The notes under the pieces: generated by a model
Seen by the model: the letters and a program-made list of their open reading frames with translations, nothing else
What the model was told of the DNA's origin: nothing
Database searches by the model: none
Program-made: the position numbers and the translations under genes
Shown here: in pieces, positions 16,832 through 35,119 of the stretch
Position numbering within the stretch: the first letter of the stretch is position 1
Layout: each line of letters begins with the position of its first letter
Assembly (NCBI RefSeq): GCF_000737315.1
Contig: NZ_JMCB01000029.1
Location: 22,721 to 86,720, forward strand
Reading direction: 5' to 3'
Source: Hyalangium minutum
GTDB taxonomy: Bacteria > Myxococcota > Myxococcia > Myxococcales > Myxococcaceae
DNA length: 64,000 nucleotides

Positions 16832-19800
16832 TCAGCGCAGGTCGTCTTCGGAGACAGACGGGGAGGCGTCCGCGGGGGCGGCCTCCGGGCCACCTGCGCC
16901 CGAGCCAAGCTGCTGGAAGAGCGGCGGAGGCTCGTCCGCGAGGAACTCGGTGAGCGAGGCCAAGGCCTGCTCGCGCAGGGGGCTCTTGGTGGTCTCGTAG
17001 CACTCGTAGCGCTCGGCGAGGAACTGCTCCTGCCACAGCGGGTGCTGCGCGTAGGGCTCGAGCGCCGCCTGACACAGCCCGTGCCAGTCCAGCACCTTGG
17101 CCAGGGCAAGCCGCACCTTGTGGCGCTGCGTCTCCAGGGCGTAGGCGGCGAAGGGCTGCTCGAAGCGGGCATACAGGCGGCGGCCCAGCGAGGGCTCCTT
17201 CTGCGCCAGCTCCTGCGTGGCCTGCATCAGCAGGCTCGTCACCGTGCGCTGGCCCCAGGGCTCGCGGCGGAGCGCGTCGTAGGCCTGATCCAGCGCGTTG
17301 AAGGCCTCCGTCCACCGGCCCTGGCGCAGCCGCAGCTCGCCGAGCAGCACATCCGCCTCCATGGGCGCCAGCGTCCGCAGCTGCTCCAGGAAGGGCATCG
17401 CGGCTTCGTCGGCCGTCTGCGCCAGCGCGCGGCTCACCATCGTCAGCTCCAGCAGGCCCTTGGGCTGCCACCCGGCCTCGCGCCACCTGCGCACAGCGCC
17501 CGCCGCGTCACCCCGGGAGAGCAGCTCCAGGAACTCGCGGCGCTCCTGCACGGAGCGGGTGAACTTCAGCGGCGGCGTCAGCAGCAGGTTCTGGGAGGAG
17601 GCCGCCGCAAGCATGCGCTGCTGCTCCACGCGCTCCCAGTCCACCGAGCCGCGGCTCACCGTGGGCCGGTTCGCCTGCAGGGACGAGGCGCCCGCGCGCA
17701 GCATTACCCGCAGCGACAGGAACTCCCGGCGGCCCACCGTCCGGGCGATGGCGAACTCCATGAAGGAGCGATCGTCCGTGCTGATGAGCGCCTCCTGGCC
17801 CTCGGCCAGGTTCCGGGTGAGCGCGTCGTTGCCCAGGTAGTGGGCCATCACGCCCTCCAGCTCGTCCGTCTGCCACGCCACGAGCGCGGCCTTGCGGAAG
17901 GGCTCCTGGGTCAACCGGGCCCGCATCCGGTCCGCGTCGTAGGAGATCGGCGCCTCGGTGGCGATGAGCAGCAGGTCCGCGCTGTTCGTCTGCCACGTCT
18001 CCACCGCCGGGAACACCGAGGCCAGCGTGGCGTAGGCGCTGCGCATCGTCGTGGCGTCAATCTCATACGCCTGGAGCCACTGGATGAAGATGCCGCCGGG
18101 GGCCAGCCGCTGCCGCGCCGCTTGATAGAAGTCCTGGGTGAAGAGGCTGGAGATGCCGGCGCGGTAGGGGTTGGAGGGCTCGGAGAAGATGATGTCGTAC
18201 TGCTTCTGCGAGGCGAGCAGCACCTCGCGCGCATCTCCGATGAAGGTGTGCACCTTGGGGTTGGAGAGGACGTTCTGGTTCACCGGAGAGCACTGCTCGG
18301 CGAACTTGAGGATGGCGGGCTCGATCTCCACCACGTCCACGCGCTCCATGTCCGGAGCCGAGCCCATCCACCCGGCGGTGCTGCCGGTGCCCAGGCCGAT
18401 GACGAGCGCCTGCTTCGGCTGCGGGTGCAGCAGCATGCCCACCAGGCCGCTCATGACCTGGGTGGAGGCATCGCCGATGCTGTTTCCGTCCGACTTGCCG
18501 TTCACATAGAACGAGGGCCCATCCACGAGACGGACGCCCACGCTGCTCTCGAGGCCCTCGTACTCCCACTTCATCTCCCGGCGAGGCGTCTCCAGGAAGG
18601 TGCGCAGCGTATTGAGGGTGGGCCGCTCCAGCCGGGCCCGGCCCGCGCCGATGGGGTTGTGGCGCCAGCCCGCGGTGGGGCCCTCCTGCATCAGCATGAC
18701 GGCTGCCAGAGCGCCCACAGCGGCGGGCAGCCAGAGCCGGCCGGCCTGCTTCTCCCGCGTCAGCGAGAGCACGAAGGCGCCGCCCCCCAGCACCAGCAGC
18801 AGCGCCACCGCGAGCTTCCACGTTCCGGGCGCCGTCAGCAGCGGCATCAGCCCGAAGCCACCGGCCAGCGAGCCGATGATGGCGCCCACCGTGTTCCACG
18901 CGTACGTGAGGCCCACCTCGCGGCCCACATTCTCCCGGCCGCGGCCCAGCAGTGCCAGGAGCAGAGGGAACTGCACGCCGGAGATGAAGGCCGCCGGGAA
19001 GATGACGAGCGAGGCCACCACGGCCCAGCTCGACACGAGCCCCAGGAAGCCGAATCCCTCGAGCGGCCGGAGCATCATCGCGAGCACCGCCATGCGGTCT
19101 CCCAGCGCATAAGGCAGCGCCATGAAGAGCGCCTCGGCCAGACACGTGAGCGCGAAGCCGCGCAGCGTCGCGGGCCGGTCCTGTCCCCACGCCGCGTAGG
19201 CCGCGCCGCCCAGGCCGATGCCCAGCAGCGCGACGATGAGGATGAGGCCGAAGGTGAAGGTGGAGCCACCCAGCAGCGGGCTCAGCATCCGGTACCAGAC
19301 GAGCTCCATCAGCAGGAAGGCGAAGCCCACCGCCGCCGCGGCGCCCAGCACGAACCGGGGCGGCGCCACCCCCACCTGGGCCTTGGCCACGGAGGCCGCT
19401 GCGGGCTCGGCTCCGGAAGCGGTCTCGGGCGCCACCACGGGGGCGGCGGCGGGGACACTCTGCTCCGGCAGCGAGCGCGAGGCCACGCGGGCGGCCACGG
19501 CCACCAGCCCGTTGACGAGACACGCCAGCCACAGCGTCTGCTGGGTGCCGAAGACTTCGAAGAGGAAGAAGGTGGACAGGGCGGCGCCAGCCACGGCGCC
19601 CAGGGTGTTCACGCCATAGAGCACAGCCAGGGCGCGCCGCCGCACGTCATCGGGGGTCTCCGCCGCGCGGGCTGCCGCGGGCAAGGTGCCCCCCATCAGG
19701 ACCGTAGGCACGGCGAGCAGCAGCGCGGAGAGCACCAGCCGCACGATGCTGCCACCCACCAGCCCCAGCGACACGGTGCCGCCGAGCGCCACATAGACCG

Positions 19801-20086
19801 TGCGGGCCAGCCACACCAGGGCCGGGGTCAGCGCCGCGCTCACGGCGATGAGGGCCTCCAGGTTGCCGTAGAGCTCCAGGGGACGGCGGTGCTTGTCGGC
19901 GCGAGAGCCCAGCAGCGCTCCGCCCAAGCCGAGGCCGGCCATGAAGATGGCGAGCACCGCCGCCGAGGCCGCGGTGGAGGCGCCGAAGATGAGCCGGAGC
20001 TCTCGCTGCCACGCGGTCTGGTAGATCAATGCGCACAGCCCCGAACCGAACAGGAACGGGGCGATCTTCAGGGCACGGGCATTCAT
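16832..20086 (-). CDS. Fused membrane (MFS-like) / spermidine-synthase-like SAM-dependent protein
   Basis: SGLCALIYQTAW, LMGGTLP, LYGVNTLGA, duplicated TM block; ALVIGLGTGST, DVVEIEP, GDAREVL, DIIFSEPSNP. Confidence 0.88.
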   Translation of the reverse strand: MNARALKIAPFLFGSGLCALIYQTAWQRELRLIFGASTAASAAVLAIFMAGLGLGGALLGSRADKHRRPLELYGNLEALIAVSAALTPALVWLARTVYVALGGTVSLGLVGGSIVRLVLSALLLAVPTVLMGGTLPAAARAAETPDDVRRRALAVLYGVNTLGAVAGAALSTFFLFEVFGTQQTLWLACLVNGLVAVAARVASRSLPEQSVPAAAPVVAPETASGAEPAAASVAKAQVGVAPPRFVLGAAAAVGFAFLLMELVWYRMLSPLLGGSTFTFGLILIVALLGIGLGGAAYAAWGQDRPATLRGFALTCLAEALFMALPYALGDRMAVLAMMLRPLEGFGFLGLVSSWAVVASLVIFPAAFISGVQFPLLLALLGRGRENVGREVGLTYAWNTVGAIIGSLAGGFGLMPLLTAPGTWKLAVALLLVLGGGAFVLSLTREKQAGRLWLPAAVGALAAVMLMQEGPTAGWRHNPIGAGRARLERPTLNTLRTFLETPRREMKWEYEGLESSVGVRLVDGPSFYVNGKSDGNSIGDASTQVMSGLVGMLLHPQPKQALVIGLGTGSTAGWMGSAPDMERVDVVEIEPAILKFAEQCSPVNQNVLSNPKVHTFIGDAREVLLASQKQYDIIFSEPSNPYRAGISSLFTQDFYQAARQRLAPGGIFIQWLQAYEIDATTMRSAYATLASVFPAVETWQTNSADLLLIATEAPISYDADRMRARLTQEPFRKAALVAWQTDELEGVMAHYLGNDALTRNLAEGQEALISTDDRSFMEFAIARTVGRREFLSLRVMLRAGASSLQANRPTVSRGSVDWERVEQQRMLAAASSQNLLLTPPLKFTRSVQERREFLELLSRGDAAGAVRRWREAGWQPKGLLELTMVSRALAQTADEAAMPFLEQLRTLAPMEADVLLGELRLRQGRWTEAFNALDQAYDALRREPWGQRTVTSLLMQATQELAQKEPSLGRRLYARFEQPFAAYALETQRHKVRLALAKVLDWHGLCQAALEPYAQHPLWQEQFLAERYECYETTKSPLREQALASLTEFLADEPPPLFQQLGSGAGGPEAAPADASPSVSEDDLR

Positions 20087-20906: not shown

Positions 20907-21971
20907 TTAGAGGGGAACCGTGGTGCAGCAGCCTGACTTCGCGCAACGCAGGTAGCCCTGGGAGACACAGGCCGAGTCTTCAGTACATGAGGGTCCCTGG
21001 TTCGGGCTGCTGCACTTGCCGCCCGTCCCACTGGAACTGGAGCCGCCGGAGGAGCACTGGCCCGCAGCCTGGATCGTCACGTTCTGGCAATGATTAACGA
21101 AACAGCCGTTGTCGTAAGCGGACTGCGTCGTGTTGTTCGGGCAGGCGGTCCGGACTTGGGATGGGACCGAACCGAGGCCCGTGTTCTTCAGGCAGATGCC
21201 CACCTGCGTGAGGTTGCAGTTCGAGTCGCAACTGAGCACGACGGACTCGGGGGAGCCAAAGGCAGCCCGCAGCTCCGTGGCTGACACCGTGCCGCCCACG
21301 TTTTGCGCCAGCAGCGCCGGGGTCCCCTGGTCACCGGGCAGGGCCTTCAGCTCGGTGATGGCCGAGGAGAAGTAGGTGCCGGAGTCCAGGCCCGTGCAGC
21401 TCCCGTGCTTGGGCCACTCATGGTCCGCCAGGAAGTCGTTATCGGACACGTAGCCGGGACCATAGATTTTCATGGCCTCTGGAATGGTGGAGGGATCCGG
21501 GAAGCAGCCGGACGGAGGGTTCTTCGAGGTGCAGGAGCCGTAGGGGGCGCAGTACTGGGGCCAGGCGTATTGGGACCCTGCCTGCTGGGCTTCCGCATCC
21601 GTGTAGCTCGGCCAGAGGCCGTGGATCGTCAGATGGGTGGCTCCAAAACTGCCACTCAAACCCTGGCACTCCTCCTTGTCCGGGTGGCCACAGCAGAAGT
21701 TGGGAGCCCAGGAAAGTGCCAGCAGATAGAACCCAAAGGGGACCGCCGTGCCGGGGCCGCCGTTGGGGCTGCCCGCGGCGTTCGCCCCGTTGGGCGTGAT
21801 TCCGGACGCAAGGGGACGCAGGTTGAACTCCTCGGCCACCTTGTCAGGAGCCGCGCGGACGGACGAGGCGGCCGGATTCTTCGGCTGTGAGGCCTCGGAG
21901 GGCGCGGGCGTCGTACGGACGCAGGCGGACCACAGGCTGACCAGGACAAGACTTGGGACGATGCGCCGCAT
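20907..21971 (-). CDS. Ribonuclease T2 family lipoprotein with Cys-rich C-terminal extension
   Basis: Lipobox WSAC; FYLLALSWAPNFC, CAS I TIHGLWP, CAS II HEWPKHGSC. Confidence 0.9.
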   Translation of the reverse strand: MRRIVPSLVLVSLWSACVRTTPAPSEASQPKNPAASSVRAAPDKVAEEFNLRPLASGITPNGANAAGSPNGGPGTAVPFGFYLLALSWAPNFCCGHPDKEECQGLSGSFGATHLTIHGLWPSYTDAEAQQAGSQYAWPQYCAPYGSCTSKNPPSGCFPDPSTIPEAMKIYGPGYVSDNDFLADHEWPKHGSCTGLDSGTYFSSAITELKALPGDQGTPALLAQNVGGTVSATELRAAFGSPESVVLSCDSNCNLTQVGICLKNTGLGSVPSQVRTACPNNTTQSAYDNGCFVNHCQNVTIQAAGQCSSGGSSSSGTGGKCSSPNQGPSCTEDSACVSQGYLRCAKSGCCTTVPL

Positions 21972-25100: not shown

Positions 25101-26733
25101 CCAGATCGCCATCGACCGGGGCGAGGTGAACCCGAAGGACAAGGGCCTCATCCGCGGGTTGCTCAACAAGATGTGGGGCGATGGCGGCGCTTTCTACGAC
25201 TGCTCCTTCGTCGTCTCCAACTGCATCCAGACGCGCTCGGATAACGCCTACCGGATCGCCAACTTCGAGTCGCAGATCGACGTGTGCCGGACGAACACTG
25301 CGCCGAGCACCGCGTTCCGATCATTCGGAGACGTGCAGGGCAAGCTGATGCTGGAGAACGCGGTGGACGACGCGGCCTTCTCCATCGGCATGCTGCCGGA
25401 GGACGTGCGCGAGAAGAACCTCTACGAGCGAGGGGATGTAACGCCGTTCGGGCAGCCGCTGTCGTACTGCTACATGCGCCAGGTCTGGGCGTACCTGAAG
25501 CAGAAGAGCCATTACGAGGCGAAGCGCCAGCAAGTGGACGCGTTCAACGCGGCCAACCGCTGGCGCAAGCAGGGGCTGGCGATGATGCCCGTGAAGTACG
25601 GCTCGGGCTACAACCTGGCGATGCTGGAGCAGGCAGCCGCGGTCGTCTCGGTGTACCACGGCGACGGCACCATCATCATCCACCAGGGCGGCGTAGAGAT
25701 GGGGCAAGGCCTGCTGACGCAGGTCCGTCAGATCGCCTCCTACGTGCTCAACGTGCCCATGGACAAGATCCAGGTCGAGGCGGCCAGGACGGCCGTCGTT
25801 CCCAATCCCACCGGCACCGGGGCGTCGACGGGAACGGCCTATAACGGCGAGGCGGTCAAGCGCACGTGCCAGGATCTGGCCTCGCGGCTGATGGCCTTCG
25901 GCTACGAGCTGCTGAAGGAGCAAGGCAACGATTGGTGCCACAGCCGGAACATCGACTTCTGGAACTACGGTGAGGCGGGCTGGAGCACCGAGGTGGACAA
26001 CAACGGGACCAAGAAGCTCATCTGGCAGAACCTGGTGGCCATGGCCTACCAGTACCGCGTGGGCCTGACGGCCACCTTCACCGCGCCCATCCCGGGAGGC
26101 GAGACGCCCATGCCGGCGCTCACCTACAAGCCGCTCGAGCTGCAGCCGGAGCTCCCCGGCTACAAGGCGAGCTCGACGGGCAAGCCCGGCGGATACGACT
26201 CGTTCCCGGGCTTTACCTACTCGGCCGCGTGCTCGGTGGTGGAGGTGGACATCCTGACGGGCGAGGTGAAGGTGTTGAGCGCGGACATCGTCTACGACAT
26301 GGGCTGGAGCCTGAACCCGGCCATTGACGTGGGCCAGGTGGAGGGCGCCTTCGTCCAGGGGCTCGGCTACGTGCTGTCCGAGAAGCTGGCCTTCGAGCCG
26401 AGTGGGCCGGAGGCCGGACGCCTCAACTCGGTGAACACCTGGCGCTACAAGCCACCGGCCGTGACCAGCATCCCGCTGGAGCTGAACGTGTCCCTGTTCC
26501 CGCGCGACTCAGTGGACGTGCCGGCGAGCCCCACCGAAGGCATCTTCTCCTCGAAGGAGATTGGCGAGCCGCCGCTGGTACTGGCCACCAGTGTGTTTCT
26601 GGCGGTGAAGGCGGCCATCCGCGCCTCGCGCCTGGAGCGCAAACTCGACGGCCTGTTCCGCTTCGACGCTCCGGCCACTGTGCAGGAGGTGCGCAGGGCC
26701 TGCGAGGTGAGTGAGAACGATCTCAAGGTGTAA
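22111..26733 (+). CDS. Single-chain xanthine oxidoreductase / aldehyde oxidase family molybdo-flavoprotein (2x[2Fe-2S]-FAD-Moco)
   Basis: CGQGGCGGC..NSCL and CGYC..GNLCRCTG (Fe-S); RNAASLGGN (FAD); GGQAHFYMET, GGGFGGK, TAFRSFG, GVEMGQGL, GQVEGAFVQG, SKEIGEPPL (Moco). Confidence 0.92.
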   Translation: MAKQVSFFLNGRPVTIEDPSPELLLIDYLRSPEVALAGPKKPCGQGGCGGCTVILSNWNEKERHAEHRAINSCLRPVLALEGLVVTTVEGTGAARRPNPRNLSHSALYSRGGALPELQTLPQPAVVEAQQAANKKRLEVIARVNKAQPQTLTAELRQEVPIHPTEFSHEGMNPVAHRLAMNNGTQCGYCTVGFVMNMSEFITNHPKATKREIEEIFDGNLCRCTGYRSILTGMKTFASDWTKEDAENRMECLPDDYAAHQVPAPRVVIPFPPAAQVAASGVSLDDGARVWRTPTSLVELARLMRQFQGKKVRLVHSNTAYGIYKEEYLEADIYLDIRSIPELNAEPKETEGGLRVGAGMNYSEFIRVLERTMLSVGEAQARKHEETDYPETTRLGATRFMARRTAGRIVRNAASLGGNTMLVLKHMAEGTGEPFPSDVFTVLAAIDAQIEYLDTQEGEAAQPRRATALELVEQVIANPKLADSIVLLAYHVPFGKENEVVLAQKVALRDVNAHSILNGASRLQLSKSLEVEEAVVVFGGIAPYPWRARKTEQALKGKTLSLAAVPALAKSLADEVGVELTRWSLRMQGLPSEGFTNEYRMQLATAFLYKAVVKTLLERGGEVPHALQSAGEIKWGNWGVSDGTQDYKPQPYKAPVAQPYIKDTAMQQASGQLHYTHELPVPPRTLNASFVLSRRALATFHFIIPGSDEAASAGDLRKHLSSRYGGFVDLITAEVFKDGGINNQGMGADQPLFAAGEVNYVGQSIALVLARTEQEAERIAGYVTERCIGYAPVKPESRLQLRSLKQSPTWWSEPVLTLDDAIRLGSVYPDYPTQSPSVSHIWKVTRNGSRFDWVTPKDTPEQRIDRTIVNRTGTLDGISCQIVESTQTCGGQAHFYMETQAAIAEPLDNHRMLIRPSSQSPSSMHQTTAMALGASYNSIEVQVPPVGGGFGGKTEQARFVAGAAAIAAQATKRPVRLVLSREQDTAMIGKRHAYFAQYQIAIDRGEVNPKDKGLIRGLLNKMWGDGGAFYDCSFVVSNCIQTRSDNAYRIANFESQIDVCRTNTAPSTAFRSFGDVQGKLMLENAVDDAAFSIGMLPEDVREKNLYERGDVTPFGQPLSYCYMRQVWAYLKQKSHYEAKRQQVDAFNAANRWRKQGLAMMPVKYGSGYNLAMLEQAAAVVSVYHGDGTIIIHQGGVEMGQGLLTQVRQIASYVLNVPMDKIQVEAARTAVVPNPTGTGASTGTAYNGEAVKRTCQDLASRLMAFGYELLKEQGNDWCHSRNIDFWNYGEAGWSTEVDNNGTKKLIWQNLVAMAYQYRVGLTATFTAPIPGGETPMPALTYKPLELQPELPGYKASSTGKPGGYDSFPGFTYSAACSVVEVDILTGEVKVLSADIVYDMGWSLNPAIDVGQVEGAFVQGLGYVLSEKLAFEPSGPEAGRLNSVNTWRYKPPAVTSIPLELNVSLFPRDSVDVPASPTEGIFSSKEIGEPPLVLATSVFLAVKAAIRASRLERKLDGLFRFDAPATVQEVRRACEVSENDLKV

Positions 26734-26767
26734 CGCAGCCATCCGCTACAACTCAGGAAGATACAAC

Positions 26768-28252
26768 ATGAACGCTAAAACCCTCACTGCCCGGCTTCGC
26801 CGGCGCAGCCTCTCGAAGTCTGTCTTGTTGGGCGCCTCGATGGCGCTGTCCGCGGTGTCCACTGGGGCCCTCGCCCAGACCACCGCGCCCGCTCCGGCGG
26901 CCGTGGCCAAGGATCCCGCCGAGGCTGCGGCCCTGCTGCGCAAGCCCGAGGGCTACAAGCTCCAGCAGAACCCCTTCCCGGACTTTGGCTACATGGTCAC
27001 CGTCGATGAGTACATGCAGAAGTACTCGGACCAGCCGCTCTTCCGGCTGAAGACGGACTTCCCCACCGCCAAGCCGAAGCAGCAGCCGGACTTCGTCCAG
27101 AAACTCGACTTCCGGAAGAACCCGCTGGACTACCTGCTCGCCGTGCGGGACTACGCCTTCGACGGCAACCTGCCGGATTGGGACCCCTTCAAGAACGCCA
27201 AGCGCAGCTGGTACCACATCCCTTGGCTCCACCCGTCCGCGCGGGGGCCGAATGCCTATCCTCCGAACGGCGGCACCGAGGGTTTCCACGGGCTGATCAA
27301 GGAGGCTCAGCTCAGCCCGCTGCAGCTCGGGCCGGGCCAGAAGGGGAAGGCGAAGGGCGGCTACTCCGTCTACGCCATCACCCTGGTCAATGACATGGCA
27401 GGGTACACGCTGGGGCAGATGTGGAAGGACCCCTCGAACCCGGACCCCAGGGCAACGGACGCACGCTACGGCGGCGGCTTCCCGCCGGGCACCGTGTTCG
27501 CCAAGCTGCTGTTCACCGACGCGCCCCAGGGGACTGACAAGCTCCCCTTCCTCGAGAACCCCCTGCAGTGGACGGCATACATCACCGAGAATTTCACCTC
27601 CAAGAAGCGTGTGGTGGGCAAGGTGAACCTGCTGCAGATGGACATCGCCGTGCGCGACGTGCGCGCCGAGGGGCCAGACGGGACGGGCTGGGTGTTTGGG
27701 ACGTTCGCGTACAACGGCCAGGTGAACAACCCCAACAAGTTCCTGAACCTCGTCCCGGTGGGGATCACATGGGGCAATGATCCCCAGAACACGGTGAACA
27801 CCACCAACCCGTTCCCGCCCACGGAGACAAAGGTCAACCCGGAGCTGAAGCAGACCATCATCTTCCCCTCCCCGCAGCTGCCGCCGCAGCACCTGGGGTG
27901 GAACGGGCGGCTGAACGGGCCCGCGGACCTGAACACCACCTCGTGCCTGAGCTGCCACATCGCGGCGCAGTACCCCGCGGTGACGGCGCTGGTGCCGCCG
28001 AGCGCGGCTCCGGCGGGCGGCAAGGAGCCGCCCAAGGACGGAGGCACGAAGGAGTGGATGCAGTGGTTCCAGAACGTGCCGGCGGCCACCTCCATGGATC
28101 CGCGCGTCTACTCGACGGACTTCTCGTTCCAGGTGGCCATCAGCCTGGAGAACTTCTACGAGGCGAAGAGGCGGCTGCAGGAGGGCTCTTACGCGAGCGA
28201 CTACCAGTTGGACCGCGTGCCGCTCGTCCGCGACGGCCTGCCCCGGCAGTAG
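26768..28252 (+). CDS. Exported monohaem c-type cytochrome-like protein of unknown function
   Basis: Signal peptide (..GALA-QT); one C-terminal-half CLSCH haem motif; PPGTVFAKLLF, MDIAVRD, GWVFGTF, resembling the cytochrome P460/c-prime-beta fold (inferred); AGGAAG RBS; starts 34 bp after the Mo enzyme. Confidence 0.7.
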   Translation: MNAKTLTARLRRRSLSKSVLLGASMALSAVSTGALAQTTAPAPAAVAKDPAEAAALLRKPEGYKLQQNPFPDFGYMVTVDEYMQKYSDQPLFRLKTDFPTAKPKQQPDFVQKLDFRKNPLDYLLAVRDYAFDGNLPDWDPFKNAKRSWYHIPWLHPSARGPNAYPPNGGTEGFHGLIKEAQLSPLQLGPGQKGKAKGGYSVYAITLVNDMAGYTLGQMWKDPSNPDPRATDARYGGGFPPGTVFAKLLFTDAPQGTDKLPFLENPLQWTAYITENFTSKKRVVGKVNLLQMDIAVRDVRAEGPDGTGWVFGTFAYNGQVNNPNKFLNLVPVGITWGNDPQNTVNTTNPFPPTETKVNPELKQTIIFPSPQLPPQHLGWNGRLNGPADLNTTSCLSCHIAAQYPAVTALVPPSAAPAGGKEPPKDGGTKEWMQWFQNVPAATSMDPRVYSTDFSFQVAISLENFYEAKRRLQEGSYASDYQLDRVPLVRDGLPRQ

Positions 28253-28264
28253 AAGCACCGCTAC

Positions 28265-28293
28265 GCGGGGGAGGCCGCAGCGGCTTCCCCCGC
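28265..28293. terminator. GC-rich hairpin, probable terminator or mRNA-stabilising stem
   Basis: 13-bp stem gcgggggaggccg / cggcttcccccgc (one G-U pair), 12 nt after the cytochrome stop; no U-tract. Confidence 0.55.
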
Positions 28294-30897: not shown

Positions 30898-31365
30898 ATG
30901 GGAATGAAGCTCGACATCAATGGCTCGGTCCGCGAGGTGGAAGCCAGCGGCGACATGCCGCTGCTGTGGGTCCTGCGTGACCTTCTGCAACTGAGCGGGA
31001 CGAAGTACGGCTGCGGAATGGCGCAGTGTGGGGCGTGCACGGTGCACCTCGACGGCAAGCCCGTTCGCTCCTGCGTCACCCCCGTCTCGAGCGTTGGTGC
31101 GCGCAAGGTCACCACGATCGAGGGGCTGTCACCGGACGGTTCGCACCCCGTGCAGCGCGCATGGTCCGAGGCGGATGTCGTGCAATGTGGCTACTGCCAG
31201 TCCGGTCAGATCATGACGGCCGTGGCGCTGCTCGAGAAGAAGCCCGATCCGACGGACTCCGACATCGACGCCGCGCTGTCGGGCAACATCTGCCGCTGCG
31301 GGACGTACGAGCGCGTGCGCGAAGCGGTCCGGCTCGCCGCGAAGCTGAAGCGAGGTGCGAAGTGA
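30898..31365 (+). CDS. [2Fe-2S] small subunit of isoquinoline-1-oxidoreductase-like molybdoenzyme (IorA-like)
   Basis: [36 protein letters not shown]. Confidence 0.92.
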
Positions 31366-33494
31366 CAGTCTCTCGACGAGGATTCCTCACGGGTGCGGCG
31401 GCGAGCACGGCGGGGCTGGTGATCAGCTTCTATGTGCCGAAGATCGTGCACGCCGCGCCCAAGGCCGCGCAGCCGCTGCCGTCCCCGAACGCGTTCCTGC
31501 GGATCGGCAGTGATGACTCGATCACCGTCCTGCTCGCGCACTCCGAGATGGGCCAGGGAATCTGGACCGGCCTGGCGATGCTGATCGCGGAAGAGCTCGA
31601 CTGTGACTGGTCGAAGGTGCGCTGCGAGCACGCCCCCGCGGCGCCGGTCTACGGCCACCCCGCCATGGGCATCCAGATGACGGGCGGGTCCACGTCCACG
31701 CATGGCGAGTTCGACCGGTACCGCAACGTGGGCGCGACGGCGAAGGCGCTGCTCCTGCGCGCAGCCGCGGAGCGATGGAAGACCACGCCAGCGAAGCTCT
31801 CCGCCGCGAACGGGGTGATCACCTTCGGTGGAGAAAGGCTGACGTACGGCGCGGTCGCCGAGGCGGCGATGAAGCTGTCCCCTCCGAAGACGGTGAAGCT
31901 CAAGGAGCCGAAGGAGTGGAAGCTGATCGGCACCAAGGTGCGCCGGCTCGACACGCCCGAGAAGATCAACGGCAAGGCACAGTTCGGGATCGACGTCTCG
32001 TTCCCCGGGCTGCGCACCGCTGTCGTGCTGCGGCCGCCGGCGTTCGGCGCGAAGCTCGTGAAGTTCGATGCCGCCGATGCGCTGAAGGTCCCTGGCGTCG
32101 AGAAGGTCGTCCAGACCGCGAACGGTGTCGCGGTGGTCGCCAGCCACTTCTGGGCGGCGAAGCTCGGCCGTGATGCCGTGCGCGCGGAGTGGTCGACGCC
32201 CGAGGGCGGCGGTGCCAGCTCCGAGAAGATCCTCGCCGAGTTCCGCCAGCTCTCGCTCGGCGAGGGCTCGACCGTGGCCGACACCGGCAAGGTGAAGGAA
32301 GCGCTCAACCTCTCCGCCAGCAAGCTCGAGGCGTCGTACGAGGTGCCGTACCTCGCGCACGCCATGATGGAGCCGCTCAACTGCACCGTGAAGATCGACG
32401 GTGATCGCTGCGAGATCTGGACGGGGACCCAGTTCCAGACCGTTGATCAGGGCACCGCGGCGCACATCCTGGGCACGACGCCCGACAAGGTCACGATCCA
32501 CACCACGTTCCTCGGCGGTGGCTTCGGCCGCCGCGCGAACCCGGCGTCGGACTTCGTCTCCGAGGCCGTGATCGTCGCGAAGGCGGCCGGCGTCCCGGTC
32601 AAGGTCGTCTGGACGCGCGAGGACGACATGCGCGGTGGGTACTACCGCCCCGCCTACGTCCACCGCGTCAACGTCGGCATCGACAAGGCGGGCCTGCCCG
32701 CAGCGTGGCATCACGTCATCGTCGGGCAGTCGATCCTCGCTGGCACTCCGTTCGAGAAGTTCATGGTCCACAACGGCATCGACGCGACGTCAGTCGAAGG
32801 CGTCGCCGACTCGCCTTATCTCGAGACCACGAAGTCCAAGCACGTCTCGCTGCACTCCCCGAAGACCCCGGTCACCGTGCTGTGGTGGCGCTCCGTGGGC
32901 CACACGCATACCGCGTTCGCGATGGAGAGCATGATCGACGAGCTGGCACACGCCGCCGGCAAGGATCCGCTCGCGTACCGCCTGGAGCTTCTGAAGGGGA
33001 AGCCTCGGTTCGCGCGCGCACTCGAGACGGCCGCAGCCAAGGCGGGCTGGGGAACGCCCGCCCCCGAGGGCCGGGCGCGGGGCCTCGCGGTGCACGAGTC
33101 GTTTGGCTCGATCATCGCCGAGGTCGCGGAGGTCTCGGTCGAGGGGGGACGCATCAAGGTCCACGCGGTGACGGCGGCGGTCGACTGCGGAACCGCGGTC
33201 AACCCGCTCGGAATCGAGGCTCAGGTCCAGGGCTCGATCGCGTTCGGGCTGACTGCGGCGCTCCACGGCAAGCTGACCATCGAGGACGGCAGGGTCATCG
33301 AGAGCAACTTCCACGACTATCCCGCGCTTCGCATGTTCGAGATGCCGAAGATCAGTGTTCACCTGATCCCCAGTGACGCGAAGATGGGTGGCATTGGCGA
33401 GCCAGCGACCGCGCCCGTCGCTCCCGCCGTTGCGAACGCGGTGTTCGCGCTTACCAAGCAACGGCTGCGCACGCTGCCGCTGCGCCTCGCATAG
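31362..33494 (+). CDS. Tat-exported molybdopterin-binding subunit (IorB-like)
   Basis: GTG start overlapping the upstream stop; twin-arginine SRRGFL; [37 protein letters not shown]. Confidence 0.9.
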
Positions 33495-33505
33495 GACTTC
33501 CTCCG

Positions 33506-34087
33506 ATGATGCGTACCTTCGTGACGCTTGTGCTCGTTCTCGCCGGATGCGGCGGCAAGATGACGACGCCCCCCACGGGCGAGAAGCCAGACCCGGCCAC
33601 CGGTGTGGCTGCATTTGCGACCGTGCGCGCGGTGCTCCAGCACCCGCGCTGCCAGAACTGCCATCCCGCGGGCGATGCGCCTCTGCAAGGCACCGAGGGC
33701 CGCGTGCACGCGATGAACGTGCAGCGTGGGCCCACGGGGCACGGCATGGCGGGGGCCGAGTGCACCACGTGCCACGGCCCGGCGAATCCTCCGAGCAACT
33801 ATGGCCTCCATGTCCCGCCCGGCTCGATCAAGGGCTGGCACATGCCGAAGCCCGAGGAAAAGCTCGTGTTCGTCGGCCTCACGCCGCGCGCCCTGTGCGA
33901 ACAGGTCAAGGACCCGGCGCGCAACGGCGGCATGGACATGGCTGCGCTCCGCGTTCACCTCGAGGATCCGCTCGTGAAGTGGGGGTGGGATCCGGGCTTC
34001 GGCCGCGAGCCGGTGTCCACGCCGTACGCGACGTTCATCGCCGCGTGGGAGACCTGGGCTGCCGCTGGCGCCCCGTGCCCCAACTGA
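33506..34087 (+). CDS. Dihaem c-type cytochrome lipoprotein (Ior-associated subunit)
   Basis: Lipobox LAGC; two haem motifs CQNCH and CTTCH; HPRC.NCHP.GD.P.Q pattern. Confidence 0.8.
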   Translation: MMRTFVTLVLVLAGCGGKMTTPPTGEKPDPATGVAAFATVRAVLQHPRCQNCHPAGDAPLQGTEGRVHAMNVQRGPTGHGMAGAECTTCHGPANPPSNYGLHVPPGSIKGWHMPKPEEKLVFVGLTPRALCEQVKDPARNGGMDMAALRVHLEDPLVKWGWDPGFGREPVSTPYATFIAAWETWAAAGAPCPN

Positions 34088-34162
34088 TCGGGGTTTGGGG
34101 CCCCCGTCTTCGTGGACTTGAGGCAAGCTCGCAGCATCTCGATTCAGGAGGCACAGCCCTCG

Positions 34163-35119
34163 ATGGCGGACCCAGTTCAAGAGGCAGTCGATGCCATGGA
34201 GAAGCACACCGGCACGGTGCAGGGGTACCGCCGGGCCCATCCCAGAGGGCTGGTGTTCCACGCGACCTTTACTCCGACGCCTGAAGCCCGGCCGCTGACG
34301 GCCGCGGAGCACTTCCAGGGTCCTCCTGTGCATACGCTCGTGCGGTTCTCGAACGCCTCGGGGAGCCCCCATGCTCCAGACCGGGGCTCGGATCGCCAGG
34401 GGGCAGTGCTGGGCCTGGCGGTGCGGTTCGATCTGCCCTCCGGGAAGCACGCCACGTGGGCCGCCGCGAACATCCCGGCCTTCGTCGCCCGCACTCCCGA
34501 GGAGTTCCTCCAGGTCACCCGGGCGCAGCGGCCGAACGCCTCGCCCCATCCCCTGCGCATGCTCGGGTACATCCTGACGCATCTCCATGCGCTCCCGGGC
34601 ATCCGGGGGATTGTCGGCACCAAGCCAGCGCCCAGCTTTGCCCACTGCCAGTACAACAGTGTCCACGCCTACCATCTGGTGGATGCGCAGGGGCAGCGCA
34701 GGGCCTTTCGCTACCGCTGGGTGCCCTCGGCGGGAGCCGCCACCTTGAGCCCGGCGGAGGCTCGAAAGCGCCCGGAGCAGTACCTGCTCGACGAGCTCCG
34801 GGAGCGTGTCAGCCGCGAGCGCGTCACGTTCAACCTCGTCTTCCAGCTGGCCAACCCAGGTGATCCGACCCACGACGCCACCCGGCCATGGCCCGAGGAT
34901 CGGCAGAAAATCCCGGCGGGGCAGCTGGTGATCGACTCGCTGTACGAGGATCAGCGGGAGTCCGAGCGGTTCGTCTTCGATCCCACCGGAGTGGTGCCAG
35001 GCATCGAGCTGTCCGATGATCCGATCCTGCACTTCCGCGCGAAGGTGTACTCAGAGTCCTACAACCGCCGCTCTTCCGAAACGAAGCCGGAGCCCAAGCC
35101 CGCTGACCTGCGGCAATGA
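34163..35119 (+). CDS. Catalase-related haem peroxidase (small SrpA-like catalase domain)
   Basis: RRAHPRG (distal His), VRFSNASG, LAVRF, FVFDP, SDDPILHFRAKVYSES (proximal Tyr). Confidence 0.85.
   Translation: MADPVQEAVDAMEKHTGTVQGYRRAHPRGLVFHATFTPTPEARPLTAAEHFQGPPVHTLVRFSNASGSPHAPDRGSDRQGAVLGLAVRFDLPSGKHATWAAANIPAFVARTPEEFLQVTRAQRPNASPHPLRMLGYILTHLHALPGIRGIVGTKPAPSFAHCQYNSVHAYHLVDAQGQRRAFRYRWVPSAGAATLSPAEARKRPEQYLLDELRERVSRERVTFNLVFQLANPGDPTHDATRPWPEDRQKIPAGQLVIDSLYEDQRESERFVFDPTGVVPGIELSDDPILHFRAKVYSESYNRRSSETKPEPKPADLRQ

Follow-up and report, generated by a model that had tools for sequence, protein, structure and literature searches.

A cytochrome P460-like haem protein and its molybdenum-enzyme partner in Hyalangium minutum and other bacteria

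We analysed a 64,000-nucleotide stretch of the Hyalangium minutum genome (contig NZ_JMCB01000029.1, positions 22,721 to 86,720; hereafter the window), in which a gene for a predicted exported c-type haem protein directly follows a gene for a fused molybdenum (Mo) flavoenzyme of the xanthine oxidoreductase (XOR) family. The two genes are neighbours at almost all loci where orthologues of the haem protein are found, and the haem protein itself is very probably a remote, expanded branch of the cytochrome P460 superfamily, lying outside the characterised family. What the pair does is a more tentative matter. We propose that both enzymes act on metabolites derived from nucleic acids, and we weigh this proposal against several alternatives below.

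Linkage of the haem gene and the Mo-enzyme gene

When one genome per GTDB species was scanned, the haem gene turned up at 80 loci, spread over Myxococcota, Acidobacteriota, Verrucomicrobiota, Bacteroidota, Planctomycetota and Alpha-, Beta- and Gammaproteobacteria. XOR genes were sought at these loci by tblastn with the window XOR, the orthologues found being of 1400-1600 aa, and linkage was counted for haem-protein orthologues of at least 54% identity. An adjacent XOR gene on the same strand, usually upstream of the haem gene and sometimes downstream of it, is present at 73 of the 78 genome loci with such orthologues. An independent metagenome scan gave the same picture, with XOR adjacent at 37 of 45 loci. 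Combined, the pair is found at 110 of 123 orthologue loci, in at least eight phyla and in both gene orders, with gaps of 25-91 bp between the two gene calls. All of the 13 orthologue loci without XOR are truncated by contig ends and have less than 2 kb of flanking sequence on at least one side.

Seen from the haem gene, XOR linkage is nearly absolute, with no assessable exception, and it defines one clade of the superfamily. Among metagenomic paralogues below 49% identity, XOR is adjacent in none of 32 cases (17 of them assessable), and both members of a divergent Pyrinomonadaceae clade (46-47% identity) are linked to a 42%-identical XOR. The original prediction on this DNA, made from the letters of the window, had proposed a conserved pairing with a fused XOR gene, and these counts establish it across phyla. 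On inspection, each of four apparent exceptions (loci L007, L062, L039 and L065) is accounted for by a contig end, a scaffold gap or a fragment. At L039 (9368-9794), an XOR fragment lies 5' of the haem gene, with a scaffold gap; at L065 (5740-6018), such a fragment precedes a haem gene which is truncated too. Faulty assembly, or a module in decay, may be the reason for these two fragments.

In the window, the XOR gene ends at position 26733 and the haem gene begins after a gap of 34 bp (26734-26767), on the same strand. A hairpin with a perfect stem begins 12 nt past the haem-gene stop codon; a 66-nt segment containing it folds with -34.8 kcal/mol (z = -3.1), and 0 of 200 shuffled sequences fold as well. 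This hairpin is not listed by a simple terminator scan because it has no T run, and it is likely to mark the end of the transcript. The spacing, a ribosome-binding site belonging to the haem gene and the hairpin downstream had all been pointed out beforehand and are all present in the sequence.

The partner enzyme carries the Pfam domains expected of a single-chain enzyme in eukaryote-like order: two 2Fe-2S domains, an FAD domain, CO_deh_flav_C, a hammerhead domain and MoCoBD_1/2. Its best matches in the PDB are rat, bovine and human xanthine dehydrogenase (XDH; E ~1e-163), along with aldehyde oxidase (AOX; E ~1e-151). When 62 XOR orthologues are aligned, the catalytic residues Q891 (bovine Q767) and E1486 (bovine E1261) are invariant, while two xanthine-binding residues are replaced: T953 stands in place of Glu802 in 61 of the 62 sequences, and C1038 in place of Arg880 in all of them. 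An arginine follows four residues after the C1038 position in 56 of them. We take this pattern (Thr, Cys and Arg where XDH has Glu, Arg and His) to be closer to the Val/Met/Lys of human AOX1 than to XDH. On these residues, the partner is predicted to be a member of the XOR family which is not of the xanthine type and has an aldehyde-oxidase-like pocket. No export signal is seen in any XOR orthologue examined, the N-termini compared starting directly at the 2Fe-2S domain.

The haem protein and its probable remote relationship to cytochrome P460

The N-terminus of the haem protein, MNAKTLTARLRRRSLSKSVLLGASMALSAVSTGALA/QT, reads as a signal peptide containing RRRSLSK, and leaves a mature protein of ~458 aa. 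There are only two cysteines in the whole protein, both within C393-L-S-C396-H397. Further upstream lie GTVFAKLL (241-248), MDIAVRD (291-297) and GWVFGTF (307-313), so that the signal peptide, the single CxxCH and the three motifs quoted in the original prediction are all found in the 494-aa translation. A word-indexed search finds more than 770 homologues. The best 120 of them cover 80-100% of the query at 61-96% identity, belong to Myxococcota, Acidobacteriota, Vicinamibacteria and Niveispirillum, and are without exception annotated as 'hypothetical'. When 30 orthologues are aligned, about one third of the positions are invariant, including K246, C393, C396 and H397.

The superfamily around these orthologues is much larger. 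An exhaustive profile search of 1.84 billion representatives (50%-identity clusters) detects 944 clusters at E <= 1e-3, 657 at 1e-10 and 280 at 1e-30, mostly with proteins of 420-530 aa. Conservation was assessed on 110 members with less than 50% mutual identity. D292 (110 of 110) and W308 are conserved in all of them, Q290 and R381 in 98%, K246 (106 of 110), E171 and E179 in 96%, and C393, C396 and H397 in 95-96%. Exactly one CxxCH is present in 100 of 105 full-length superfamily representatives, and the other five have none. That CxxCH is kept both in orthologues and across the superfamily argues that the features predicted for the haem-protein gene are not due to chance.

Signal peptides are found throughout the haem-protein orthologues. 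They are of the lipoprotein type, with a lipobox cysteine, in Bacteroidota and many Acidobacteriota, and of type I elsewhere; the haem protein is thus predicted to be exported by the Sec pathway, often as a lipoprotein. The original prediction had drawn attention to a leader (RRRSL) resembling those of the twin-arginine translocation (Tat) pathway, for which the consensus is S/T-R-R-x-F-L-K. The motif is indeed present in the window, but comparison of N-termini shows that RR-x-F/L-x-K is confined to the Hyalangium clade (RRRSLSK in the window, RRGFPK or RRGFLQ in its relatives); Archangium, Bacteroidota and many other orthologues lack it, and it is not a feature of the family. With a cytoplasmic XOR and an exported haem protein, the two partners would lie on opposite sides of the inner membrane, and direct electron transfer between them is therefore unlikely. 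This agrees with a doubt already voiced in the original prediction.

Four independent lines of evidence (Pfam, annotation, structure and residue register) converge on the P460 family and on the same register. Pfam gives Cytochrome_P460 (PF16694) as the sole family match of the window protein (aa 232-318, E = 7.6e-4, 20.3 bits). The same family is matched by 27 of the 30 orthologues and, at E <= 0.01, by 60 of 101 diverse superfamily members (best E-value 1.8e-9), and no second family recurs. Three relatives score above 27 bits (P0253, 33.2; P0246, 28.8; P0290, 28.0). As for annotation, one paralogue on a Variovorax plasmid is labelled 'cytochrome P460 family protein' by the NCBI annotation pipeline PGAP. 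NCBIfam has no match for the haem protein, nor does the PDB, whether searched with the single sequence or with a profile of the orthologue alignment.

Structural evidence comes from two AlphaFold2 models. The first, built from 30 close orthologues, is poor, with a predicted local distance difference test score (pLDDT) of 57.7; the second, built from a 117-sequence alignment which includes representatives of 50%-identity clusters, reaches a pLDDT of 93.5 and a predicted template-modelling score (pTM) of 0.93. Searching the PDB with the second model using Foldseek, the top 17 matches are all P460 or cytochrome c'-beta structures (among the latter 7s5o and 7zs4), and no other fold rises above noise. 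The low-confidence model gave an identical list of matches.

The residue register was obtained with hhalign against a P460 alignment, built after the sequence of Nitrosomonas europaea P460 (NeP460) had been checked against PDB entry 2je2. Residues 163-416 of the window protein fall on residues 38-187 of NeP460. Within this alignment, GGFPPGTVFAKLL of the window protein lies on GEFRDGTVTVKEL of NeP460, which pairs K246 with the lysine cross-linked to the haem (Lys70 in the mature protein, K96 in the precursor). LLQMDIAVRD lies on YIGLEASVKD, pairing D292 with Glu96/97 (E122 in the P460 alignment), and TGWVFGTF on GNWAFYIF, pairing W308 with W138 (precursor numbering). Finally, TSCLSCH lies on AECAACH, and C393, C396 and H397 pair with C162, C165 and H166. 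The residues which are invariant in P460 coincide with the most conserved residues of the superfamily.

Several results pull the other way. The 20.3 bits of the window protein are under the Pfam gathering score of 27. The Foldseek matches are weak (E 0.016-0.34, template-modelling score on the target 0.31-0.35, root-mean-square deviation 4.4-10 A), and the conserved N- and C-terminal regions of the protein have no structural match. Against the Nitrosomonas-type P460 alignment, hhalign gives a probability of 12-18%, and a hidden Markov model (HMM) made from Nitrosomonas-type P460 sequences alone fails to detect the family when tested against decoys. With the narrow hhalign and HMM comparisons this weak, the claim of homology rests on the broad Pfam model, on the residue register and on Foldseek; for the window protein in particular it is a homology by transitivity, since relatives of this sub-threshold protein score against PF16694 or exceed its threshold. 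The P460/c'-beta relationship which the original prediction had suggested from motifs is therefore recovered as a remote homology, through Pfam, the model, the aligned lysine and CxxCH. In the comparison of folds, P460/c'-beta alone was retrieved, but with weak scores.

Genomic surroundings and proposed function

The features of the pair and of the divergent gene next to it are collected in Table 1.

Table 1. Location of the paired genes and of associated features, in window coordinates
Feature	Position	Strand	Basis
Predicted exported mono-haem c protein, 494 aa (ATG at 26768, TAG at 28250-28252), very probable expanded P460-superfamily member	26768..28252	+	Open reading frame (ORF), Pfam, alignments, model
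Fused XOR-family Mo-flavoenzyme, 1540 aa	22111..26733	+	Pfam domains, PDB matches
Shine-Dalgarno-like AGGAAG, 7 nt 5' of ATG, in the intergenic gap	26755..26760	+	Read from sequence
Predicted signal peptide, ~aa 1-36, ending GALA/QT, with RRRSLSK	26768..26875	+	Sequence, orthologue N-termini
Probable P460-like beta-sheet core, ~aa 163-400, with two large insertions	27254..27967	+	Pfam, hhalign, Foldseek
Lys246 codon AAG	27503..27505	+	Aligned to cross-linking Lys70 of N. europaea P460
Asp292 codon	27641..27643	+	Aligned to second-sphere Glu96/97 of NeP460
CLSCH haem-c attachment motif (C393, C396, H397)	27944..27958	+	Sequence, conservation
13-bp GC-rich hairpin after the stop codon, without T-tract	28265..28293	+	Folding versus shuffles
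Exported RNase T2, lipobox LWSAC, divergent from the XOR gene	20907..21971	-	Pfam, translation

Recurrent neighbours of the pair were identified by clustering the ORFs of the loci, with tblastn seeds for the metagenome loci. They are a PF04185 phosphoesterase (phospholipase C/acid-phosphatase family), present at 22 genome and 13 metagenome loci, a DNase II-like protein (PF03265; 17 and 11 loci, respectively), XdhC (17 and 12) and a multicopper oxidase with a Tat signal (9 and 5). In a Flavobacterium-type operon, XOR, haem protein, DNase II-like protein and phosphoesterase follow each other, and in several loci XdhC comes next. The multicopper oxidase is usually accompanied by a second P460-like paralogue, ~27-30% identical to the window protein, which keeps the lysine, the aspartate and CxxCH. 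This paralogue and the multicopper oxidase lie beside the XOR-haem pair in Acidobacteriota and Myxococcota (L005, L011, L014, L023, L029, L085, L093, L102 and L116), which suggests that the family works alongside periplasmic O2-reducing oxidases. The RNase T2/XOR/haem-protein arrangement of the window is found again in Hyalangium gracile (L085), where the multicopper oxidase follows. The RNase T2 of the window has a Cys-rich C-terminal tail.

Fusion proteins provide another view of the P460-like domain. It is joined to an S1/P1 nuclease and an Endonuclease I in P0253, to an Endonuclease I in P0246, to an S1/P1 nuclease in P0353 and to an EEP nuclease/phosphatase in P0291. Two further fusions are of a different kind: P0340 (L089) combines it with a Mo domain of the sulfite-oxidase family, and P0272 with a DoxX/MauE-type membrane domain, which hints that some members of the family exchange electrons with a Mo centre or with the quinone pool. 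P0253 (L088, 8001-11147) is surrounded by genes for an Endonuclease_NS protein, a 1410-aa patatin-like protein, an M6 peptidase, trypsin-like proteases and a RoxA-like cytochrome c; this cluster looks like a set of degradative enzymes.

The contexts of distant paralogues have no neighbour in common. Paralogues on plasmids of Variovorax (L173) and Rhizobium johnstonii (L175) adjoin amidohydrolases of 500-550 aa, for which guanine deaminase, 8-oxoguanine deaminase and TRZ/ATZ deaminases come out as best matches, all of them weak. The Rhizobium paralogue also has a GMC oxidoreductase and a ferritin-like protein next to it. In an Opitutaceae metagenome-assembled genome, a gene for a MOSC-domain protein (L087, 293-1114) lies just 5' of a series formed by a paralogue, the phosphoesterase, XOR and the haem protein, an arrangement seen once. 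A single IMG/VR contig (L172, 10001-11188, within a 113-kb uncultivated virus genome) carries a relative, at 37% identity, and on some marine metagenome contigs (L147-L149) paralogues occur together with small acidic ORFs and a gene resembling thymidylate synthase, so that a few paralogues may belong to phages or prophages. A role in defence was considered and dropped, as PADLOC has no match for the haem protein, XOR, the DNase II-like protein or the phosphoesterase.

Elsewhere in the window, another enzyme of the XOR family, built from two subunits as in IorAB, also has a haem protein as a neighbour (30898-35119, + strand). Its subunits are a 155-aa 2Fe-2S protein (30898-31365) and a MoCoBD large subunit (ORF 31026-33494, with a start probably near 31362); past one intervening ORF lies a gene for a 335-aa catalase-related haem protein (34112-35119). 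On the other strand, positions 16832-20086 encode a 1084-aa protein in which a major facilitator superfamily transporter is fused to a spermidine-synthase-like domain, with C-terminal tetratricopeptide repeats (NF037959).

Putting these elements together, we propose that the haem protein would be a periplasmic haem-c enzyme, lipid-anchored in many taxa, with a much-expanded P460-type beta-sheet domain as its core. From the conserved CxxCH, the lysine at the cross-link position and the acidic residue at the position of the P460 glutamate, we infer a five-coordinate, probably Lys-cross-linked, catalytic haem. This predicted covalent haem, with an open polar distal face and with D292 at the proton-relay position of P460, would oxidise a small nitrogenous substrate rather than serve as a simple electron shuttle. 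With the cytoplasmic, FAD-containing Mo hydroxylase, the haem protein would form an obligate two-gene module. As the two proteins are predicted to lie on opposite sides of the membrane, their coupling would be through a shared membrane-permeant or transported metabolite and not through electrons, successive steps on one metabolite family being catalysed by the haem enzyme on the periplasmic side and by the Mo enzyme on the cytoplasmic side. The neighbouring nucleases, phosphoesterase, multicopper oxidase and amidohydrolases, together with the nuclease fusions, point to nucleic-acid or nucleobase catabolism, and the pathway may be an oxidative processing of N-heterocycles from nucleic acids.

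Haem binding, the cross-link, the catalytic role, metabolite coupling and the class of substrate are all deduced from sequence, and different parts of the proposal do not deserve the same trust. We hold its structural and genomic part with considerable confidence. The part concerning nucleobase metabolites is tentative, its chances being a little short of even, and for the package as a whole, namely a P460-type periplasmic enzyme with a metabolite-coupled Mo partner in nucleobase breakdown, we see the odds as balanced. In its boldest form, the proposal makes the window protein the first example of a large, still unnamed family of periplasmic enzymes which carry a Lys-cross-linked haem of the P460 type in ordinary heterotrophs. 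Their substrates would be nitrogen-containing compounds set free as nucleic acids are degraded (aminopurines, N-hydroxylated or oxidised bases, hydroxylamine), and the obligate Mo partner would act on the same metabolite in the cytoplasm. This form is unlikely to be right. If true, it would reveal a previously unrecognised redox branch of nucleobase catabolism and a possible heterotrophic source of NO or N2O.

Part of the genomic evidence speaks against such a role. The DNase II-like protein and the phosphoesterase are absent from the window and from most loci, the XOR-haem pair being all that is universal, and no transporter, nor any recurring regulator, was found conserved with the pair in the neighbour analysis. 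These DNase II-like and phosphoesterase neighbours lack signal peptides, which leaves the picture of extracellular nucleic-acid degradation incomplete. Proteins of this signal-less kind, DNase II-like (of the phospholipase D superfamily) or PF04185, occur at L035, L037, L041, L045, L047, L050, L056, L075, L084, L086 and other loci; a cytoplasmic DNase II homologue is unexpected, and instead of DNA these proteins may in fact cleave small phosphodiesters. Moreover, the P0340 and P0272 fusions fit an electron relay as well as they fit catalysis.

An electron relay is what one would expect if the haem protein were a direct redox partner, that is, an electron-accepting or electron-donating subunit of the Mo enzyme on the same side of the membrane. 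Strict adjacency, short gaps and the occurrence of both gene orders are compatible with this arrangement, as are the two paralogues fused to a Mo domain of the sulfite-oxidase family (P0340) or a DoxX membrane domain (P0272); the Tat-like leaders of the Hyalangium clade (RRRSLSK, RRGFPK) would even allow, in principle, the Mo enzyme to hitch-hike across the membrane. We rejected hitch-hiking, however, as the twin-arginine motif is specific to one clade and haem c maturation is periplasmic. The XOR orthologues examined lack a leader for export, and electrons would leave the enzyme at its own FAD, whereas most haem-protein orthologues carry plain Sec or lipoprotein signals and covalent attachment of haem c takes place outside the cytoplasm. 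Moreover, the conserved residues point to a P460-like catalytic pocket rather than to a His/Met electron carrier, and Pfam matches the haem protein and its relatives to no cytochrome c family, only to P460. We thus find a shared electron path improbable. The original prediction had linked the pair to the binding of NO and N-oxides or to signalling. In this scheme, the Mo enzyme would make NO from nitrite in the cytoplasm, a reaction of which XOR enzymes are capable, and the periplasmic P460-like protein would bind NO, or oxidise it or hydroxylamine, in a detoxifying or signalling role. As NO passes through membranes, it could couple the two compartments, and the conserved lysine, acidic residue and CxxCH are the determinants needed for NH2OH oxidation in NeP460 (PMC11928373). 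Nevertheless, across ~160 loci there is no recurrent transporter or reductase for nitrite or nitrate and no recurrent NO-responsive regulator; the partners which do recur are nucleases, the phosphoesterase and the multicopper oxidase, and the hosts are mostly aerobic heterotrophs. Nitrite reduction is also a side activity of XOR and would not account for an invariant remodelled pocket devoid of the xanthine-binding Glu and Arg. This part of the original prediction found no supporting gene, and we give it a low probability.

Hydrogen peroxide would be another diffusible link. The Mo enzyme would release H2O2 or superoxide from O2, and the haem protein would be a peroxidase or peroxygenase, or would need H2O2 for maturation of its cross-link. 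H2O2 crosses membranes, the pocket pattern is presumably that of an AOX, and the recurrent multicopper oxidase is in line with oxidative chemistry; furthermore, one c'-beta member is peroxidase-like, and the cross-link can be formed with peroxide (Li2O2) (PMC11928373). A deliberate production of H2O2 in the cytoplasm would nonetheless be self-damaging, and the nuclease associations would be left unexplained, so that this scheme has little chance in our view. Those associations are accommodated if the pair serves to detoxify or turn over nucleobases which have been N-hydroxylated or oxidised in other ways, for example 6-N-hydroxylaminopurine, with the haem protein oxidising R-NHOH or NH2OH and the Mo enzyme converting the base analogue. 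Such a function unites the hydroxylamine chemistry of P460, the nucleic-acid associations and the non-xanthine pocket. N-hydroxylated bases are known to be handled in a Mo-dependent manner by MOSC proteins and xanthine oxidase; the MOSC family, presumably implicated in this process, is represented at the Opitutaceae locus, and deaminase-like amidohydrolases lie beside the plasmid paralogues. The evidence is circumstantial throughout, the MOSC adjacency being limited to one locus, and we regard this function as quite unlikely. Finally, the two genes could be co-inherited without functional coupling, or the haem protein could be a non-haem structural or binding protein with a vestigial CxxCH, a motif missing in 5 of the 105 full-length representatives. 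Linkage at 110 of 123 loci in at least eight phyla, in both gene orders and with no assessable exception, and conservation of CxxCH, K246 and D292 at 95-100% below 50% identity make this extremely unlikely. A P460-type periplasmic enzyme, coupled to the Mo enzyme through a metabolite of nucleobase breakdown, is the reading we retain.

Novelty and comparison with known systems

P460 and XOR/AOX are themselves known; what is new is a large family of expanded P460-superfamily proteins with an undescribed obligate Mo partner. Our literature search found no paper linking P460-like proteins to XOR or other Mo enzymes or to nucleases, and a 2025 review of the P460 family mentions neither molybdenum nor xanthine (PMC11928373). 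Work on P460 chemistry, in which a Lys-cross-linked haem oxidises hydroxylamine to give NO or N2O, has been confined almost entirely to nitrifiers and methanotrophs. The window protein and its relatives conserve the determinants of this cofactor at three times the size, and they are common among heterotrophs of soil and sea, in the Acidobacteriota, Verrucomicrobiota, Bacteroidota, Planctomycetota, Myxococcota and Proteobacteria. Solving the pair would assign functions to two large 'hypothetical' families and test the roles of P460-type haems beyond nitrification; it could also define a bacterial AOX-like enzyme, and possibly reveal an oxidative step in the recycling of nitrogen from environmental DNA and RNA. 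As a module of two genes present in culturable Flavobacterium, Niveispirillum, Archangium and Hyalangium, it is experimentally tractable.

The closest characterised proteins are NeP460 (2je2) and the P460s of Nitrosomonas sp. AL212 and Methylococcus capsulatus (McP460), which are exported mono-haem c proteins with a beta-sheet core, as is predicted for the window protein. The order of motifs is common to both groups: G-T-V-x-x-K, the acidic h-h-E/D-h-x-V-K/R-D, G-x-W-x-F and CxxCH. Canonical P460 and c'-beta proteins are, however, small homodimers (~150-200 aa), and the window protein falls well outside this size range, with ~458 aa against ~160-170 aa for mature characterised P460s (17-20 kDa, c'-beta included), or about three times as much. 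The additional length corresponds to a conserved N-terminal region of ~100 aa, an insertion of ~70 aa before CxxCH and ~97 aa after it; in canonical members the single CxxCH, whose His is the proximal ligand of the haem, stands close to the C-terminal end of the domain. The window family further differs by an Asp where P460 has a Glu, and by a distal-loop motif, G-T/R-E-G-x-H/R-G-L-x-x-E, which is unrelated in sequence to P460. Its members are often lipoproteins and are found in heterotrophs beside a Mo enzyme and nucleases, not in nitrifiers.

The c'-beta proteins of M. capsulatus, N. europaea and Thermus thermophilus would share the superfamily fold with the window family. What separates P460 from c'-beta is the Lys cross-link to the haem, the lysine being replaced in c'-beta by Phe, Met, Leu, Val, Ile or Glu (PMC11928373). 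The polar pocket of P460 enables NH2OH oxidation, while c'-beta pockets are mostly hydrophobic and bind gases (PMC11928373). Unlike c'-beta, the window family retains the lysine in 96% of its members, along with many conserved polar residues.

As for the Mo enzyme, it has in common with eukaryotic XOR and AOX the single-chain 2Fe-2S/FAD/Mo-cofactor layout and the catalytic Gln and Glu; it differs from them in being ~200 aa longer, bacterial and strictly paired with an exported haem protein. Pairs of Mo enzymes and cytochromes are known, namely the IorAB-type aldehyde or deoxyribose dehydrogenases, NicAB and SorAB, in which the cytochromes are class-I c-type carriers located in the same compartment as the Mo partner. 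The cytochrome-c urate oxidase PuuD is a precedent in which a product of purine breakdown is oxidised with the help of haem c, at the membrane or in the periplasm. In all these systems, as here, a c-type haem protein is genetically paired with a Mo enzyme or a purine pathway. Compared with IorAB, NicAB and SorAB, the window pair combines a P460-like haem protein with a Mo enzyme which has its own FAD, the two being assigned to different compartments. The arrangement of the E. coli tynA/feaB type, in which the gene for a periplasmic amine oxidase lies beside that for a cytoplasmic aldehyde-oxidising enzyme and the product diffuses between them, follows a logic analogous to that proposed here, with unrelated protein families and cofactors.

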